Shown here one piece after another: positions 52,758 through 64,000 of a stretch of 64,000 bases of DNA. The DNA is from Auanema rhodensis (taxonomy: Eukaryota > Animalia > Nematoda): contig OZ059897.1 in the NCBI GenBank assembly GCA_964057225.1, positions 7,068,001 through 7,132,000 on the forward strand. The letters are read 5' to 3'. Below the pieces are notes generated by a model. The model saw nothing but the letters and a program-made list of their open reading frames with translations. It had not been told where the DNA came from and ran no database searches. Numbering within the stretch: the first letter of the stretch is position 1; each line of letters begins with the position of its first letter. Made by a program: the position numbers and the translations under genes.

Positions 52758-55700
52758 ATGGTGTATGGATTAACTGATGCTTTAAAGAATTTGAATTCAT
52801 ATTGTCAATCAACTAGTAATCGCTTACGTGATTCATTTTCTCCCAGTCGTAAGTCCATGTTTTACAGTTGTTTTTTTGTTTTTTGATATATAATCATTTA
52901 AAGGACAAGGATCAATTCCTAGTATAAGTTCACCGTCCACTCCTTCTAAGAATAAAAGCTCAAAAACTCAGGACGAATTGGTAGAAGATATGTCGTCCGA
53001 AGACAGTATGCCAGATAGTAACATGGGTTAGTTTTACATATAATTTTTATTATATTTTATTTTATTATTACTATTATATGTAATAATTATATATTTTTCT
53101 TCCTTTAGGTATGTCCCGTACACAATTCCGTCGTTTTGGAAAAGAAACTGTCGATTACATAGCTGATTATATGGAAACTATTCATAAGAGACGTGTTGTA
53201 CCAGCTATTGAACCTGGATATTTGAAGGTTATTCTATCTTATATATGATATTTTAATCAATATTTGTGTAAATATAGGATTTAATACCATCTGATGCTCC
53301 TGATAAACCAGAATCCTGGGAATCTGTCATTGATGATTTTGAGAAGTTGATTATGCCTGGAATTACTCATTGGCAACATCCAAGGTATGTTTAGTTGTTG
53401 TTTTGTTTTTGATGTTTCTGAGTATTTTACACATAAACATGTTTAGATTCCACGCCTATTTCCCGGCTGGTAATAGTTTTCCATCAATTTTGGCTGATTT
53501 GCTAGGTGACGCATTGGGATGCGTTGGATTCAGCTGGGTATGATCTTGGTAACTTATCCACAAGTCTAGTTCTATATTTCAGGCTTCATGTCCAGCTATG
53601 ACGGAATTAGAGATGATCATGCTTGATTGGTTCGGAAAAATGATTGGACTTCCCAAAGAGTTTTTACCTTTGACTGAAGGAGCCAAAGGTGGTGGGGTTA
53701 TTCAGGTATAACATACACAATGACATAACCTCCAATATCTGCTGAAACTTTGTAGGGATCAGCCTCTGAATGTAACTTCGTTTCGTTACTAGCTGCTCGA
53801 TTTGAAGTAATGAAAGAGCTTCGTCAACGTTTTCCATTTGTTGAAGAAGGTCTATTGCTCTCAAAACTGATTGCATATTGCTCTAAAGAGGTCACAAGCA
53901 TATATTCTCAGAAGCCTCTCTCATCAATCTACTTATTCTAGGCTCACTCATCTGTTGAAAAGGCTTGTATGATTGGAATGGTTAAACTAAGAATACTAGA
54001 AACTGACAGCAAGTTCAGATTACGCGGTGAAACGTTGAGAAATGCCATTCAGGTTCGATTGACGAGAGTCAAGAAAATTGAAAAAATATTTTTCAGGAAG
54101 ATAGAAATCTGGGACTAATCCCATTCTTTGTTTCTACAACATTAGGAACAACTTCATGTTGTTCATTCGATGTACTATCTGAAATAGGACCTGTATGTGA
54201 AGAAAATGAGTAAGAATACCTGAATGTGTGACTGATGTTTACAATAATTTTTCAGACTTTGGTTGCATGTTGATGCAGCTTATGCTGGTTCAGCTATGAT
54301 CTGTCCAGAAAATCGTCATCTGATGAACGGCATAGAATATGCCATGTCCTTCAATACTAACCCTAACAAATTTATGCTAATTAATTTTGATTGTAGTACT
54401 ATGTGGTAAGTTCTAAGTTGCTCTGGGCTAGTAATTAAAAAAAAATGTTTGTAGGGTCCGTGATCGTTTTAAACTAACTCAAGCATTGGTAGTTGATCCA
54501 CTGTATCTACAACATAGTTGGATGGGTAAGATTCTAAGTTATCAGTCAGCAGTATCAACTTCTATATGTTTAGATAAGTCAATCGATTATCGTCATTGGG
54601 GTATTCCACTGAGTCGAAGATTCCGTTCTTTGAAATTATGGTTTGTCATCCGTATGTATGGAGTTGAAGGTCTACAACGCTATATTCGAGAGGTATCATT
54701 GAGTAATGATACTATTTTGAATCACACATCATGATTTTCAGCATTGTCGATTAGCTAAGAAGATGGAAGCTTTAGTTCGTGCTGATCAAGTTTTTGAAAT
54801 AGTTGGCGATGTTCATCTTGGTTTAGTATGCTTCCGGATGAAAGGTGATGATGAACGAAATCAATTACTTCTGACTCGATTAAATAGTTCCGGACGTATA
54901 CATATGGTTTGTTGAACATTTTACAACTTTTTAAAGTTTCTCTTATCAAGGTTCCTGCTTGTCTTAATGATCGTTTCGTCATTCGCTTTTGTGTTTGTGC
55001 TGAAAATGCTTCTGACAAAGATATTGAAATAGCTTATGATATTATTTCCCAGGCAGCTCAACATATATTACGTAAGTTGATCTCGAAACTCAAGATATAT
55101 ACAAAGGAATAATGTTATAGATGAAAAAGCTGCTGAAGTTTTGGTTGAAGATAGGGAAGCTGAAGAACTCGAAGAAGAAGCCTATAAGGCTGAAGAAGAA
55201 GGCAGAGAACGCAAGGTATACAGATCTAGATAGCATGTACAAGATTCATTTGTAATCTTTTCTATAGATTTCTTTGGATAATGTTCCAACTCATCCACCT
55301 ATGGAGACTCAAATATCAAAAGAAGAACTATTGGCATACAAACAACAGGAAAGTTTAGCCAAGAAAAGGTAGGTCAAAATACATTATTGTTATGATTGAT
55401 GATGGTGTACAGTGGTGAAGCATGTTTCTAAAAGTTATGTTGTTCAGAGTGTCGTGCTGTAGAGTAGGACCATGCCCATGTTTAGCATGAATCGTGTGAA
55501 TGCAATTCGTTTTGTTTTCTTAGGAAAATATTTTTTCTAACCCTTTTTACGCATAATCATATCTTGTTTATACAGACTTTTGTTATCCTTGTACTTTTTT
55601 TTTTCTTACTAATACTAATCAAAAGAATTATATTTTCATCAGCTATGCTAAATAAATTATCATTACTAAATGTGTTTGTGTTTTGTGGTTGTGGTTGGGC

Positions 55701-59371: not shown

Positions 59372-60076
59372 TCAACTCAACTGAATCTCTTCTGTTATTA
59401 GTCTTTCTCCTCCCACCTTTGTAGCCCTAGCTTGCTCATCGTTAACTAAATCATTCGTGGCATCGTCAGTACTTTTGTTTATATTAAGATTTTTGATATT
59501 AGTTTTACGAAGAAGTTCAAAAAATTCCTGGGAGTTTTTAACCGTAAATCCTTTAAGAAGCACTTCACCACAATCAATTGCAAAGTATCGTGGCAGTGAT
59601 GGGCGACAACATCTGATAATATTTATTCCAATGATTTCGATTACGTTTAAATCCAAATTACAAACCTGCTCGGGTCATAATTCCACCAAATATTATCTCT
59701 TACACCCCATGTAACCATTTGGGATGAATCTTTTATCTGTTCTATGGATTGAATAGATGAAATAGCTATTCGTTTCTGAAGGCCTTTAGGAAAATAATAA
59801 CATTTAAGGATAATACAATCTTGACTTAACTGTAAATGAACAAAAATGTTTAATTTTATACTTGAAAATGGAAAAGGAGAACTCTGTTTTCTGCTGACTA
59901 ACCTTGCAAAATCGATCCTCATACACAACATCAATGTCATGCTTCTCATCTTCTGACGTCGGATCTTCATTATATTCCGAACAATCACTAATAACACAGA
60001 CTCGTGTGTTATTCCTTTTGAAATCATGGGAAGGAGCAGTAGCAGGTGAGGGCGTAACTCCATCCTTCCAGGGCAT
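59372..60076 (-). CDS. Small conserved hypothetical protein (YYFP...WG...WW...KGFTV pattern, probable PH-like fold), 3 exons
   Basis: Exons 60076-59903, 59829-59666, 59612-59372: ...VVYEDRFCKLSQDCIILKCYYFPKGLQKRIAISSI...TWGVRDNIWWNYDPSRCCRPSLPRYFAIDCGEVLLKGFTVKNSQEFFELL... Confidence 0.85.
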
Positions 60077-60481: not shown

Positions 60482-61272
60482 TCACTGATTTTGGCATGTA
60501 CATTTTAAGCTGGATGCTCGACGTTCAAAACCATAATGCTCTAGATCGAAGACATCGTAGCTATCGAGACCAAATGTTCGATGAGTTCCTGAAATATGCA
60601 GACATATTATTTGATTTGATTGCTTTGAATCTTTGAATGCTTGTCTCTTTGCATCAATAGTTCAAACTTATTTTGCATACGAAAAATCTCTTTTTTTGCT
60701 ACACAATAGAGCTAATTGGATGTGGATTAAAATTTTGGAACAACATGCATGAAAGACAATGTGTGCTATGTTGAGGGAGAGAAATATTTTCTTGGCTATA
60801 ATTGAAACTACATTAAGAGAAATCAACACACCTGTCTGATTTCGAAAATCCCACATCTCTAAAAGGCATGCCGGCTTTACGATAACAGCAACAGCTGCAT
60901 CATCCCACTACACAAATTATCATGATAATAAGGCTATTTAAGATGCTCAATTGTGATTTACCATTGCTCCTAGAGCGCCATTTCCATTGATACGAACGCG
61001 AAAAACATCTTCAAATGAGCAGTTTGCTGAAGAAAAGACAAGAGCACAACAAGCTGAACATTTCGTAAGAAGCGTTGGCACGCATCCAGAAAATAAGGAA
61101 GATGAGACAGCGACCAAAAGAGAACAAATCAGAAAAGGAATGAGAATATAATTCTGCTGAAAATTGAAGGTTAGCAATCAATGTAGTTTACAATTAAGAA
61201 AAAAAAAGGTTAGCCAATCATTCGAATAAGATATTAAAAAAACTAAAAAGATTAAAAAGTGTGTACCTTCAT
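60482..61272 (-). CDS. Secreted Cys-rich syncollin / beta-gamma-crystallin-like protein (127 aa), 4 exons
   Basis: Exons 61272-61267, 61156-60962, 60907-60832, 60588-60482 splice in frame to MKQNYILIPFLICSLLVAVSSSLFSGCVPTLLTKCSACCALVFSSANCSFEDVFRVRINGNGALGAMWDDAAVAVIVKPACLLEMWDFRNQTGTHRTFGLDSYDVFDLEHYGFERRASSLKCTCQNQ*. The first exon is uncertain. Confidence 0.8.
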
Positions 61273-64000
61273 ATTCTTTAAGTGAATATTTACTATTTAT
61301 ATTTTGTGTGAAGAAGAAGTTCGAAGGGGAAATAGTTACAAAAGTATTTTTAATATGGTTAATGAACCGTTTTAGAATAAAAATATTTATGCTAGATATA
61401 AGAATAGTGAAAACAGATCGATTGTGTGTTAAGAATCGCAATGACATTTATCATTAGCTCTCTAGACTATAAGAACCAGACATGCTGCTGTAACAGAACT
61501 CAAATCAATTTTTAAGAATAAAAACACAAATTGGATTCAGATGTTTCTTTTATTATTTATTATTATATATGCATTTGTCATGTAGATTATTATCTCGTCA
61601 GTTGTCCACTCTTAATCTGTTAAGCCTGTACGATGATCAGGCTACACACTTGTTTTGACACTCCTCCTCCCCTCCCTTTCTTCAACTTTATCTTTGACTT
61701 AGTTTAGGCGTAATGCGTATTAGGATAACATTGCGAATTTCTTTTTCTTTTTTGTTGAATTTATATGTTTATATAGTGTATCACAGCAATTTTTATATTC
61801 CAGAAAAAAAACAAAAAATGGGGAAAACATAACAACTGAAAACGACCATCATATTTTATTCGAGACTTTAAGGATTGGTGAATATGTACGAAAAAAAAAA
61901 AGGAAATAGTATAGTAGTTGCAGTGTGTATGTGTATGTTAGTATGGGACGCTAGTGAAAAGGAAAATAGTAGAGAAAGGAAGACATATAGAGAGACAGAG
62001 TGATAGTAGAATAACACTGAGATAGATTAAGAAATAGAGAAAGAGAGTAAGACATATAGATAAATGAAGAGATCTTTATAGAAAAAAGAAAAAATTAAGT
62101 AGGAAAATGCATGTTTGCAAACGCTTTTTCTCTGAAAGAATATGAAGCTTAACTTTCTTATAACTATATAAAGAAAGCATTTGATAGAGGCAGATTCAAA
62201 CACTCAAAATAGTTAGATTATACAGTAATTCATTAAGGTAATAAACTAATGTTCATAGATAATTTCATATAACAAGACTATGAATCTTCTTTTACACTTT
62301 TAAAAAATGGTCTGATTACGATTGTTTAGTTAAGTATATACATCTGTATAGTTTTTCATTCATTGAATTCTTCATTTTTCTCTTTTCAAATAATATCACA
62401 CATAATAGATTACAATTGGATATAGAATATTACTTGATAGATCATACATATTGTTATATATGTCATTCATAATACTTTTTTTTCCCAATAGCAAAACTAA
62501 GGTACACAAAGCAAAGTAGTCAATATTTTGAGGTCACGTACACATACATGCCTCCATCTTCCACAATTGTTCCAATTATACTTCATATGTTTAAACGGAA
62601 TAGTCTGAGTTTATGGGAATATAACTAATGTATATGATAGATACTTCTTACTGTTCGAAAGTGAATATCTAAATTGCAATTCAGCGCAAAATGCTGTGAA
62701 AGAATGAAAGATGAGGAAGTTTGTTTTCAGCGTCATTTAGCGGCGCTTTTCAGGAGAAAAATTGAATTACTCAAAGATCTAAATGTCTCTCTGCTATGTT
62801 AGTTCAAATGTTAACCAGTAACAACATGTGGCGGAAGTACACTTATTTTTATTTGTAATTTGGTTATGAGCGGTTGTATTTCTTCTATTAGCTGAATGGT
62901 CCAAATTTCACAATCTGTTGTTCAACAATTAAATGCCGGGTTAATAAAGGAACAAAGTCCATGTTACGAGGGAAAAGATCAATTATTCTAAAATTTCTCA
63001 TGAAAAATTAAAAAAGAAAAAAGGTTTTTTTTAAAGTTTCTGACACACAACATAAGATTATTATACACTTCATAAAATCTATACGTTCATCCAACCATCT
63101 ACCCTTACGTTTATTCATTGTCTGTGGCGTATGTGTCGGCCTTTCGTGTTGTCCATGTATTGTTGGCCTTCGTAGGATTCCGCAAGATGGCGATTTTCCT
63201 TAATCTATGAAACTGTCATTTGAAATAACAATTTTGGAGAAATCTTGTAAGAAAAAAAATGAAAAAAAAAAAAAACTTTTCAGAGAAGAATGAGAAGATT
63301 AATATTAGTTGGACTTCATAATAAATAACAACAACAAGGATCACGCAAAACGTAATAGATGTGTTTCTTTAAAATAAAGTATTTAGATCTTTATTGCAAG
63401 AAAGGTTGAAGTTAAGACGTCTTGAATCCAAATTTTCACTGACTGCTGCTATAGTATTCTAATTGAGTCAAACCTAGTATAAGAGATGCAAATGTAAGTG
63501 CATGCAACGGAAAAAAAGGGGATATGACAATAAACAAGAGAACACAGGAATGAAAAAAAATTATTTAAAGTTATAAATATAATTCTTAATATATATATAT
63601 TCATTTTTTAACGTTATTCATCTTTTTCAAGAATTTTAGCTGCACAATAGGATAGAATTCTCAAGTGTGTATTGGTCTATTTGTGAACACCATGACGCGA
63701 TAAAATACAGCTTTAAATGTATTTTTCTTAACGTTAAAATCAAAAAATGAAATTGAAATTAGTGCAGTTGGATAGAGCATAACAAGGAGATTTGAATGAT
63801 ATAAAAGTTTTAAAAAAATATTTGCGTATATAAGTTTTCCACAGCGTCGAGAAAACTCTGAATTGTAAAGTATGCTTTCTTAGAACTGTTATAACATTTT
63901 ATAAAATTAGTTACATGACTAATAACATATACCATTCGATAGAAAAGAGTTTAAGGAATCCAAATATATAAAATTTGGTAAAAAATATATCAGGTACGTA

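Follow-up and report, generated by a model that had tools for sequence, protein, structure and literature searches.

In the window, the stretch of 64,000 nucleotides of Auanema rhodensis DNA that was analysed here as a whole, four exons were identified on the minus strand which, judged from their sequence and its conservation, form a real protein-coding gene (Table 1). The spliced coding sequence amounts to 2 + 65 + 60 = 127 codons with introns of the GT-AG type, and the exon translations give a protein with a hydrophobic N-terminus, a following domain of about 100 residues and eight cysteines. Four exons coding for a signal-peptide protein of 127 residues had been proposed before in a sequence-only reading of the region; the same layout was found here, and the motifs quoted in that reading are all present in the exon translations. 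The gene region is AT-rich, with about 30% G+C, and the gene is single-copy in the 181-Mb genome of A. rhodensis. The earlier description of the gene as unannotated holds for the A. rhodensis genome, whereas orthologues from elsewhere carry an annotation as hypothetical proteins. In word searches, the window's own protein was absent from the matches in the protein collection, which fits this description without proving it. No match was obtained in a word search with the open frame of 76 residues that surrounds exon 2, the length window of which shuts out relatives of 127-140 residues.

Table 1. Features at the locus, with positions in the window and, where present, the counterparts in locus L003 of Auanema sp. 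JU1783.
Feature	Position	Strand	Description
Second conserved non-coding block	63132-63243	minus	83% identity over 117 nt with L003 4504-4617; about 1.9 kb upstream of the gene
Conserved non-coding block	61396-61512	minus	78% identity over 122 nt with L003 5742-5858, even though synonymous sites are close to saturation; 125-240 bp upstream of the ATG
Exon 1	61272-61267	minus	ATG AAG (Met-Lys), then GT donor; identical micro-exon (ATGAAG followed by GT) annotated in Auanema sp. JU1783, L003 6001-6006
Exon 2	61156-60962	minus	65 codons; TTTTCAG acceptor, GTAAAT donor
Exon 2, signal-peptide part	61156-61088	minus	about 23 codons that finish the predicted signal peptide
Exon 2, mature part		minus	next 42 codons; predicted first Greek-key motif and five of the eight conserved cysteines
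Exon 3	60907-60832	minus	76 nt, phase 1 at the end; predicted strand bearing the sixth conserved Cys; conserved sequon N-Q-T
Exon 4	60588-60482	minus	ATTTCAG acceptor; remainder of the predicted second Greek key, A-S-S motif, terminal C-T-C, TGA stop at 60484-60482
AATAAA polyadenylation signal	60441-60436	minus	41 nt past the stop; read directly from the sequence
Downstream gene	~59510-60076	minus	exons ~60043-59897, 59835-59662 and 59590-59510; counterpart L003 6934-7510
Open frames	54486-55112	plus	resembling the C-terminal portion of an aromatic-amino-acid (pyridoxal-dependent) decarboxylase

Exon 2 contains no in-frame ATG before its hydrophobic stretch, so that an upstream start exon is required, and the nearest compatible one is the exon of six bases, ATGAAG. 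An alternative first exon in phase 0 at 62586-62548 had also been considered in the sequence-only reading; it has no counterpart in Auanema sp. JU1783 and is disfavoured. A gene start at this exon of 13 codons, and hence a longer N-terminus, is very unlikely: the exon contains an ATG and an open frame, fits phase 0 and is followed by a GTATGT donor, but it shows no conservation against the JU1783 DNA, whereas the ATGAAG exon with its GT donor, lying 110 nt ahead of exon 2, is conserved in both sequence and position. In addition, a less suitable signal peptide would result from 13 polar residues preceding the hydrophobic core, and the conserved promoter-like block sits between the two candidate start exons.

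In the family alignment, the closest member is P0010, the protein encoded at locus L003 of Auanema sp. JU1783. The identity between the two proteins is 80% in exon 3 and 82% in exon 4, and in the mature part of exon 2 they agree at 34 of the 42 residues. The L003 gene also consists of four exons, including the same micro-exon, and its three intron positions and phases are identical to those in the window. The introns have lengths of 110, 54 and 243 nt in the window and of 89, 176 and 64 nt in JU1783. When the DNA of the window was aligned with L003, only the exons, the downstream gene and the two upstream blocks aligned, and the introns did not. Counts summed exon by exon between the window and P0010 resulted in a pN of 0.17, a pS of 0.63 and a dN/dS of about 0.14, with synonymous sites near saturation; on these values, the gene is under purifying selection. 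The gene order is kept in JU1783 as well, with a small gene on the same strand being followed by a convergent gene for a pyridoxal-dependent decarboxylase.

At the transcript level, the second junction, between exon 2 and exon 3, is confirmed in the orthologue of another nematode. Two spliced Logan contigs from different runs, L004 (SRR15275139) and L005 (SRR15275156), are 99% identical to the genomic contig L006 until the donor of the second intron, and run straight into exon 3 at the point where L006 shows GTACGT. Support for the exon layout and its junctions as proposed earlier is therefore present in three forms, namely the gene structure of the orthologue, the purifying selection and a spliced transcript contig of an orthologue. 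It is extremely improbable that the model arose as an artefact of splicing prediction or describes a pseudogene in decay, with the four pieces not being one expressed gene in A. rhodensis: the transcript support comes from an orthologue, the first exon has six coding bases only and no entry for the window's protein turned up in the searches of the protein collection, but the frames are intact, the exon layout and phases are identical in JU1783, the dN/dS is low, the exons are conserved and the introns are not, the gene order and the upstream block are conserved, orthologues are predicted in more than 10 nematodes, and an orthologue is spliced at the second junction in transcript contigs.

In L004 and L005, the end of exon 3 coincides with that in the window, and unrelated sequence follows in place of the usual last exon. 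This sequence may come from an alternative 3' exon or from a retained intron of the non-GT type, or may reflect a chimeric assembly.

The conserved non-coding block closer to the gene has an invariant core of 25 nt, which includes TGATAA (61453-61448). TGATAA is the type of site that is bound by intestinal GATA factors in C. elegans. By its sequence, this block is a candidate promoter element of the GATA type. The second block, which is located further upstream, could be an enhancer or a small RNA of a new type. For both blocks, no match was found in Rfam, the tRNA scan was empty and the folding energy was not unusual. A scan for promoters and terminators of the bacterial type revealed no enrichment and is irrelevant to a eukaryote.

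Proteins similar to the one encoded in the window have been identified in a number of other nematodes. A phmmer search of the full library with exon 2 led to P0003, a protein of 120 residues from Nippostrongylus brasiliensis, which is continuous across both downstream junctions. Further members were obtained by word searches, with P0003 as seed and then with an alignment of the relatives of P0003. Members were found in the strongylid parasites Nippostrongylus, Haemonchus, Cylicocyclus, Parelaphostrongylus, Necator and Ancylostoma, as well as in Heterorhabditis, Auanema, Caenorhabditis auriculariae, C. bovis and C. angaria; among the matches listed, no family member originated from the Elegans group of Caenorhabditis. 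The database labels of all members are hypothetical, uncharacterised or mutually unrelated automatic names. In the open-access literature, no paper was found which ties syncollin or secreted crystallin-fold proteins to nematodes, and a search for the locus tags of the orthologues likewise gave nothing relevant. Since the family is present in the free-living Auanema and Caenorhabditis, its core role would not be the manipulation of a host.

Nine members of the family are full-length. Common to them are eight invariant cysteines, arranged as C-x7-C-x2-CC-x8-C ... C ... C-x-C, a domain 98-102 residues long and an N-x-S/T sequon in the second half, which is N-Q-T in the window. The domain is neutral to acidic, with a pI of 4.7-7.7 in the orthologues and with nine Lys and Arg versus 11 Asp and Glu residues in the window protein. 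In three Caenorhabditis members, P0011 from C. auriculariae, P0012 from C. bovis and P0016 from C. angaria, the domain is followed by a C-terminal tail of 40-60 residues, which is rich in Thr, Ser and Pro, mucin-like and missing from the other nematode members. The composition of these tails hints at a glycosylated, possibly matrix-associated form of the protein.

For the Pfam, ESM Atlas and AlphaFold analyses, full-length orthologues from the database were used as queries, and the window protein was examined as single exons. A first AlphaFold run on five sequences gave a pLDDT of 46.8; it was discarded and not used in the fold search. With an alignment of 15 rows, designated A2, an AlphaFold2 model with a pLDDT of 81 and a pTM of 0.68 was obtained. 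In A2, P0010 forms the first row and the window exons are included as separate rows, so that the modelled protein is the orthologue, which is about 80% identical to the window protein in the mature part. The model consists of an N-terminal helix at residues 4-24, corresponding to the predicted signal peptide, and a beta domain.

A Foldseek search of the PDB with this model gave top matches that are almost all beta-gamma-crystallin domains, with TM values (by target) of 0.6-0.7. The matches comprised Neurospora APP, clostrillin, flavollin, hahellin, nitrollin, spherulin 3a, protein S, lens crystallins, DdCAD-1 and Schistosoma IPSE/alpha-1. Superposition by VIA-align resulted in Z scores of 8-9 and an rmsd of 2.6-3.6 Å over 80-91 aligned residues, by which whole target domains were covered; the beta-gamma-crystallin type of fold that the sequence-only reading had suggested is thus borne out by the AlphaFold model. 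When 48,161 representative chains were scanned with VIA-align, the top 30 ranks were all of the beta-gamma-crystallin type (Z 9.0-4.4), and unrelated folds were found from a Z score of 3.7 down. Because the first 30 ranks belong to one fold and the Z score then drops, the fold assignment is firm for the predicted model. According to this model, the mature part of about 100 residues is one beta-gamma-crystallin domain built from two Greek-key motifs.

The second Greek key contains the sequence W-D-F-R-N-Q-T-G, followed by A-S-S. In comparison to the classical signature, Y/F/W-x4-Y/F-x-G with a conserved Ser in either motif, the Trp, the Gly and the Ser are kept, and a Gln takes the place of the aromatic residue. 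In the first Greek key, which is degenerate, a Cys replaces the aromatic residue and V-A the expected Ser, so that the signature is retained only by half. Calcium-binding beta-gamma-crystallins of microbes contain paired N/D-N/D-x-x-S/T-S motifs. This motif is kept at neither site in the family: the first site reads D-D-A-(A/P)-V-A, without a Ser or Thr, and the second E-x-x-A-S-S, without a second acidic residue, the equivalents in the window being D-D-A-A-V-A and E-R-R-A-S-S. Up to four disulfides would be possible among the eight conserved cysteines, and the conserved N-x-S/T sequon is located at the predicted hairpin in the second Greek key.

The fold predicted for the worm protein is present in a number of single-domain beta-gamma-crystallins from microbes and invertebrates, namely the APP domain from Neurospora, spherulin 3a, clostrillin, flavollin, nitrollin, the Ciona crystallin and geodin. 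The worm protein keeps W-x4-Q-x-G and the later A-S-S in the second Greek key. The identity to these proteins is only 12-20%, however, and the worm protein differs from them in being secreted and, by prediction, braced by disulfides, and in not keeping the calcium motif. IPSE/alpha-1 from the eggs of Schistosoma mansoni (PDB 4el6, 4aka) is likewise secreted by a helminth, and its beta-gamma-crystallin fold contains disulfides. It aligned with the P0010 model over 86 residues with a Z score of 7.0 and 20% identity, a likeness at the level of structure; IPSE/alpha-1 is a flatworm protein which acts on the immune system of the host, whereas free-living species (Auanema, Caenorhabditis) are among the carriers of the nematode family. 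Small, secreted and disulfide-rich Greek-key proteins with antimicrobial activity were also found among the fold members, namely the antifungal protein AFP1 from Streptomyces tendae, MiAMP1 from plants and the yeast killer toxin WmKT (Z 4.5-5.4), with MiAMP1 being present in the ESM Atlas list as well. Compared with the matches to the crystallin domains proper, they are far weaker, and show only that the fold can carry an antimicrobial activity.

The only Pfam family that recurred in the searches is Syncollin (PF15138), which matched seven of the nine full-length members with E-values of 8e-5, 1.4e-4, 4.3e-4, 6.5e-4, 0.01, 0.017 and 0.056. The sequence-only reading had described the protein as syncollin-like, and in this respect the Pfam search agrees with it, at scores below the curated cut-off: the matches reached 14.1-23.3 bits, all of them under the Pfam gathering score of 32.8, so that the nematode proteins are not members of PF15138 by the rule of Pfam. 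The alignments to the profile are collinear and cover positions 5-112, 13-112 or 16-112 of its 112 positions. For P0003, the alignment stops at residue 117, which is the last Cys of the C-T-C motif and corresponds to position 112, the end of the profile. The remaining two full-length members gave no match to PF15138. The three long exons of the window, submitted singly, gave no Pfam match either, since single exons are too short for it. One match to Porin_3 (E-value 0.33) was the sole other Pfam match among the nine members, and the families Crystall (PF00030), Crystall_3 (PF08964) and Inhibitor_I36 matched none of them up to an E-value of 10.

When the whole genome was scanned in six frames with PF15138, neither the scan nor its controls gave a match, so that the scan is uninformative. 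A sequence search of the PDB with the family profile gave nothing relevant, which implies that no relative, including syncollin, is detectable there by sequence. Matches of exon 2 to leucine-rich repeats in the PDB sequence search consisted of summed scores without a significant single stretch, and were rejected as spurious.

In the ESM Atlas, the chordate Syncollin cluster was the second-nearest cluster to P0003 overall, behind an unnamed nematode cluster, and the nearest named cluster to P0010 by features, with scores of 0.93 (197 of 256 features in common) and 0.94 (207 of 256 features), respectively, on a scale on which 0.9 or more arises for 4-10% of shuffled proteins. Syncollin was also the first row in the Atlas structure search with P0010, with TM values of 0.63/0.65 and 101 residues aligned over residues 23-125; both sides of this comparison are predicted models, so that it counts as evidence at the level of a lead. 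Most rows from the crystallin families align 88-94 residues in this search, and the 101 residues of Syncollin take in the stretch before the crystallin core. The other named matches in the Atlas were Crystall, Crystall_3 and Inhibitor_I36, and the top ten named matches all belong to the family or clan of the best match. The families of the same fold follow close behind Syncollin, with feature scores of 0.90-0.91 and TM values of 0.55-0.63.

Taken with the recurrence of PF15138, the position of Syncollin as the nearest named Atlas cluster, both by features and by predicted structure, supports the syncollin-like reading in the form of a remote homology. On these profile and model comparisons, the nematode family is supported as a remote relative of vertebrate syncollin which is closer to syncollin than to the remaining described beta-gamma-crystallin families. 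The reading as a whole, comprising a real gene, a secreted beta-gamma-crystallin domain, a nematode family that is a remote relative of vertebrate syncollin and nearest to it among the described families, and a stable binding module as the presumed nature of the product, is given a probability of roughly three in four.

The alternative that competes most directly with this reading is a secreted protein of the beta-gamma-crystallin fold in which the likeness to syncollin extends to the level of the clan only, so that an independent nematode family with a function unrelated to that of syncollin would be present. The protein might then be a component of the matrix, the eggshell or the cuticle, bind metal or calcium, or inhibit proteases in the manner of the I36 family. 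This alternative is unlikely, although several observations speak for it: the Syncollin scores never reach the Pfam cut-off, other families of the same fold are close behind in the Atlas, the domain is not cationic, the long mucin-like tails rich in Ser, Thr and Pro in the three Caenorhabditis members suggest an attachment to the matrix, and inhibitors, killer toxins and adhesion proteins are also among the structures with this fold. It is opposed by the Pfam result, where Syncollin is matched by seven of nine members, nearly over the full length and ending at the C-x-C motif, while Crystall, Crystall_3 and Inhibitor_I36 are not matched up to an E-value of 10, and by the Atlas, where Syncollin is at the top of both searches with P0010 and aligns over more residues than the crystallin families. 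For a calcium binder in particular, inspection of the alignment revealed that the canonical motif is not kept.

Syncollin (SYCN, PF15138) is a protein of the zymogen granules and the neutrophil granules of vertebrates, and has in common with the nematode proteins a signal peptide and a single domain of about 100-110 residues, with about 130 residues in total. Syncollin contains seven cysteines. In contrast, the nematode family has eight conserved cysteines with an extra N-terminal C-x7-C-x2-CC arrangement, a conserved N-x-S/T sequon, a neutral to acidic domain and, in some members, the mucin-like tails, and the worm gene contains three introns. Whether vertebrate syncollin serves in granule maturation, in pore formation or in antibacterial defence is still debated.

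The protein encoded in the window is predicted to enter the secretory pathway by its N-terminal signal peptide, and its mature domain to fold as a compact, disulfide-rich beta-gamma-crystallin unit. The protein would work outside the cell, or in a lumen or a secretory granule, as a stable binding module. Syncollin has been reported to oligomerise and to build doughnut-shaped structures on bilayers, and its peptidoglycan binding, membrane permeabilisation, oligomers and restriction of bacterial growth have been described (bioRxiv 10.1101/2022.02.14.480106). By analogy, the likeliest single role of the nematode protein, though still a tentative suggestion, would be that of an oligomer which binds cell-wall glycans or membranes of bacteria in gut defence. 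Expression in the intestine, with which the conserved upstream TGATAA element would fit, would be in line with such a role, and the neutral to acidic domain counts against a classical cationic, membrane-active mechanism.

A stronger version would hold that syncollin is no invention of the vertebrates and that a true orthologous lineage exists in nematodes, in the form of a gut-secreted oligomeric effector which binds peptidoglycan and damages bacterial envelopes. This version is doubtful. If it were true, syncollin would be an ancient bilaterian protein of defence or of granules, open to genetics in a culturable worm such as Auanema. A description of syncollin outside the vertebrates was not found in the open literature, and a nematode family next to syncollin in fold would extend the lineage to invertebrates. 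It would also give a name and a fold to proteins in at least 11 nematodes, including the livestock and human parasites Haemonchus, Necator and Ancylostoma, and the free-living, culturable genus Auanema offers a place to test what such proteins do. Since secreted proteins of the beta-gamma-crystallin fold are common, the gain would be modest if the relation were one of the clan only.

Directly downstream on the same strand, the next gene starts 406 bp past the stop codon (182 bp in JU1783), so that the two genes may form an operon. It has at most 76% amino-acid identity with its counterpart in Auanema sp. JU1783, and its exons gave no match in Pfam. The decarboxylase-like open frames on the plus strand are convergent with this gene pair; in the equivalent arrangement in JU1783, L003 7710-10691 is annotated as Pyridoxal_deC.
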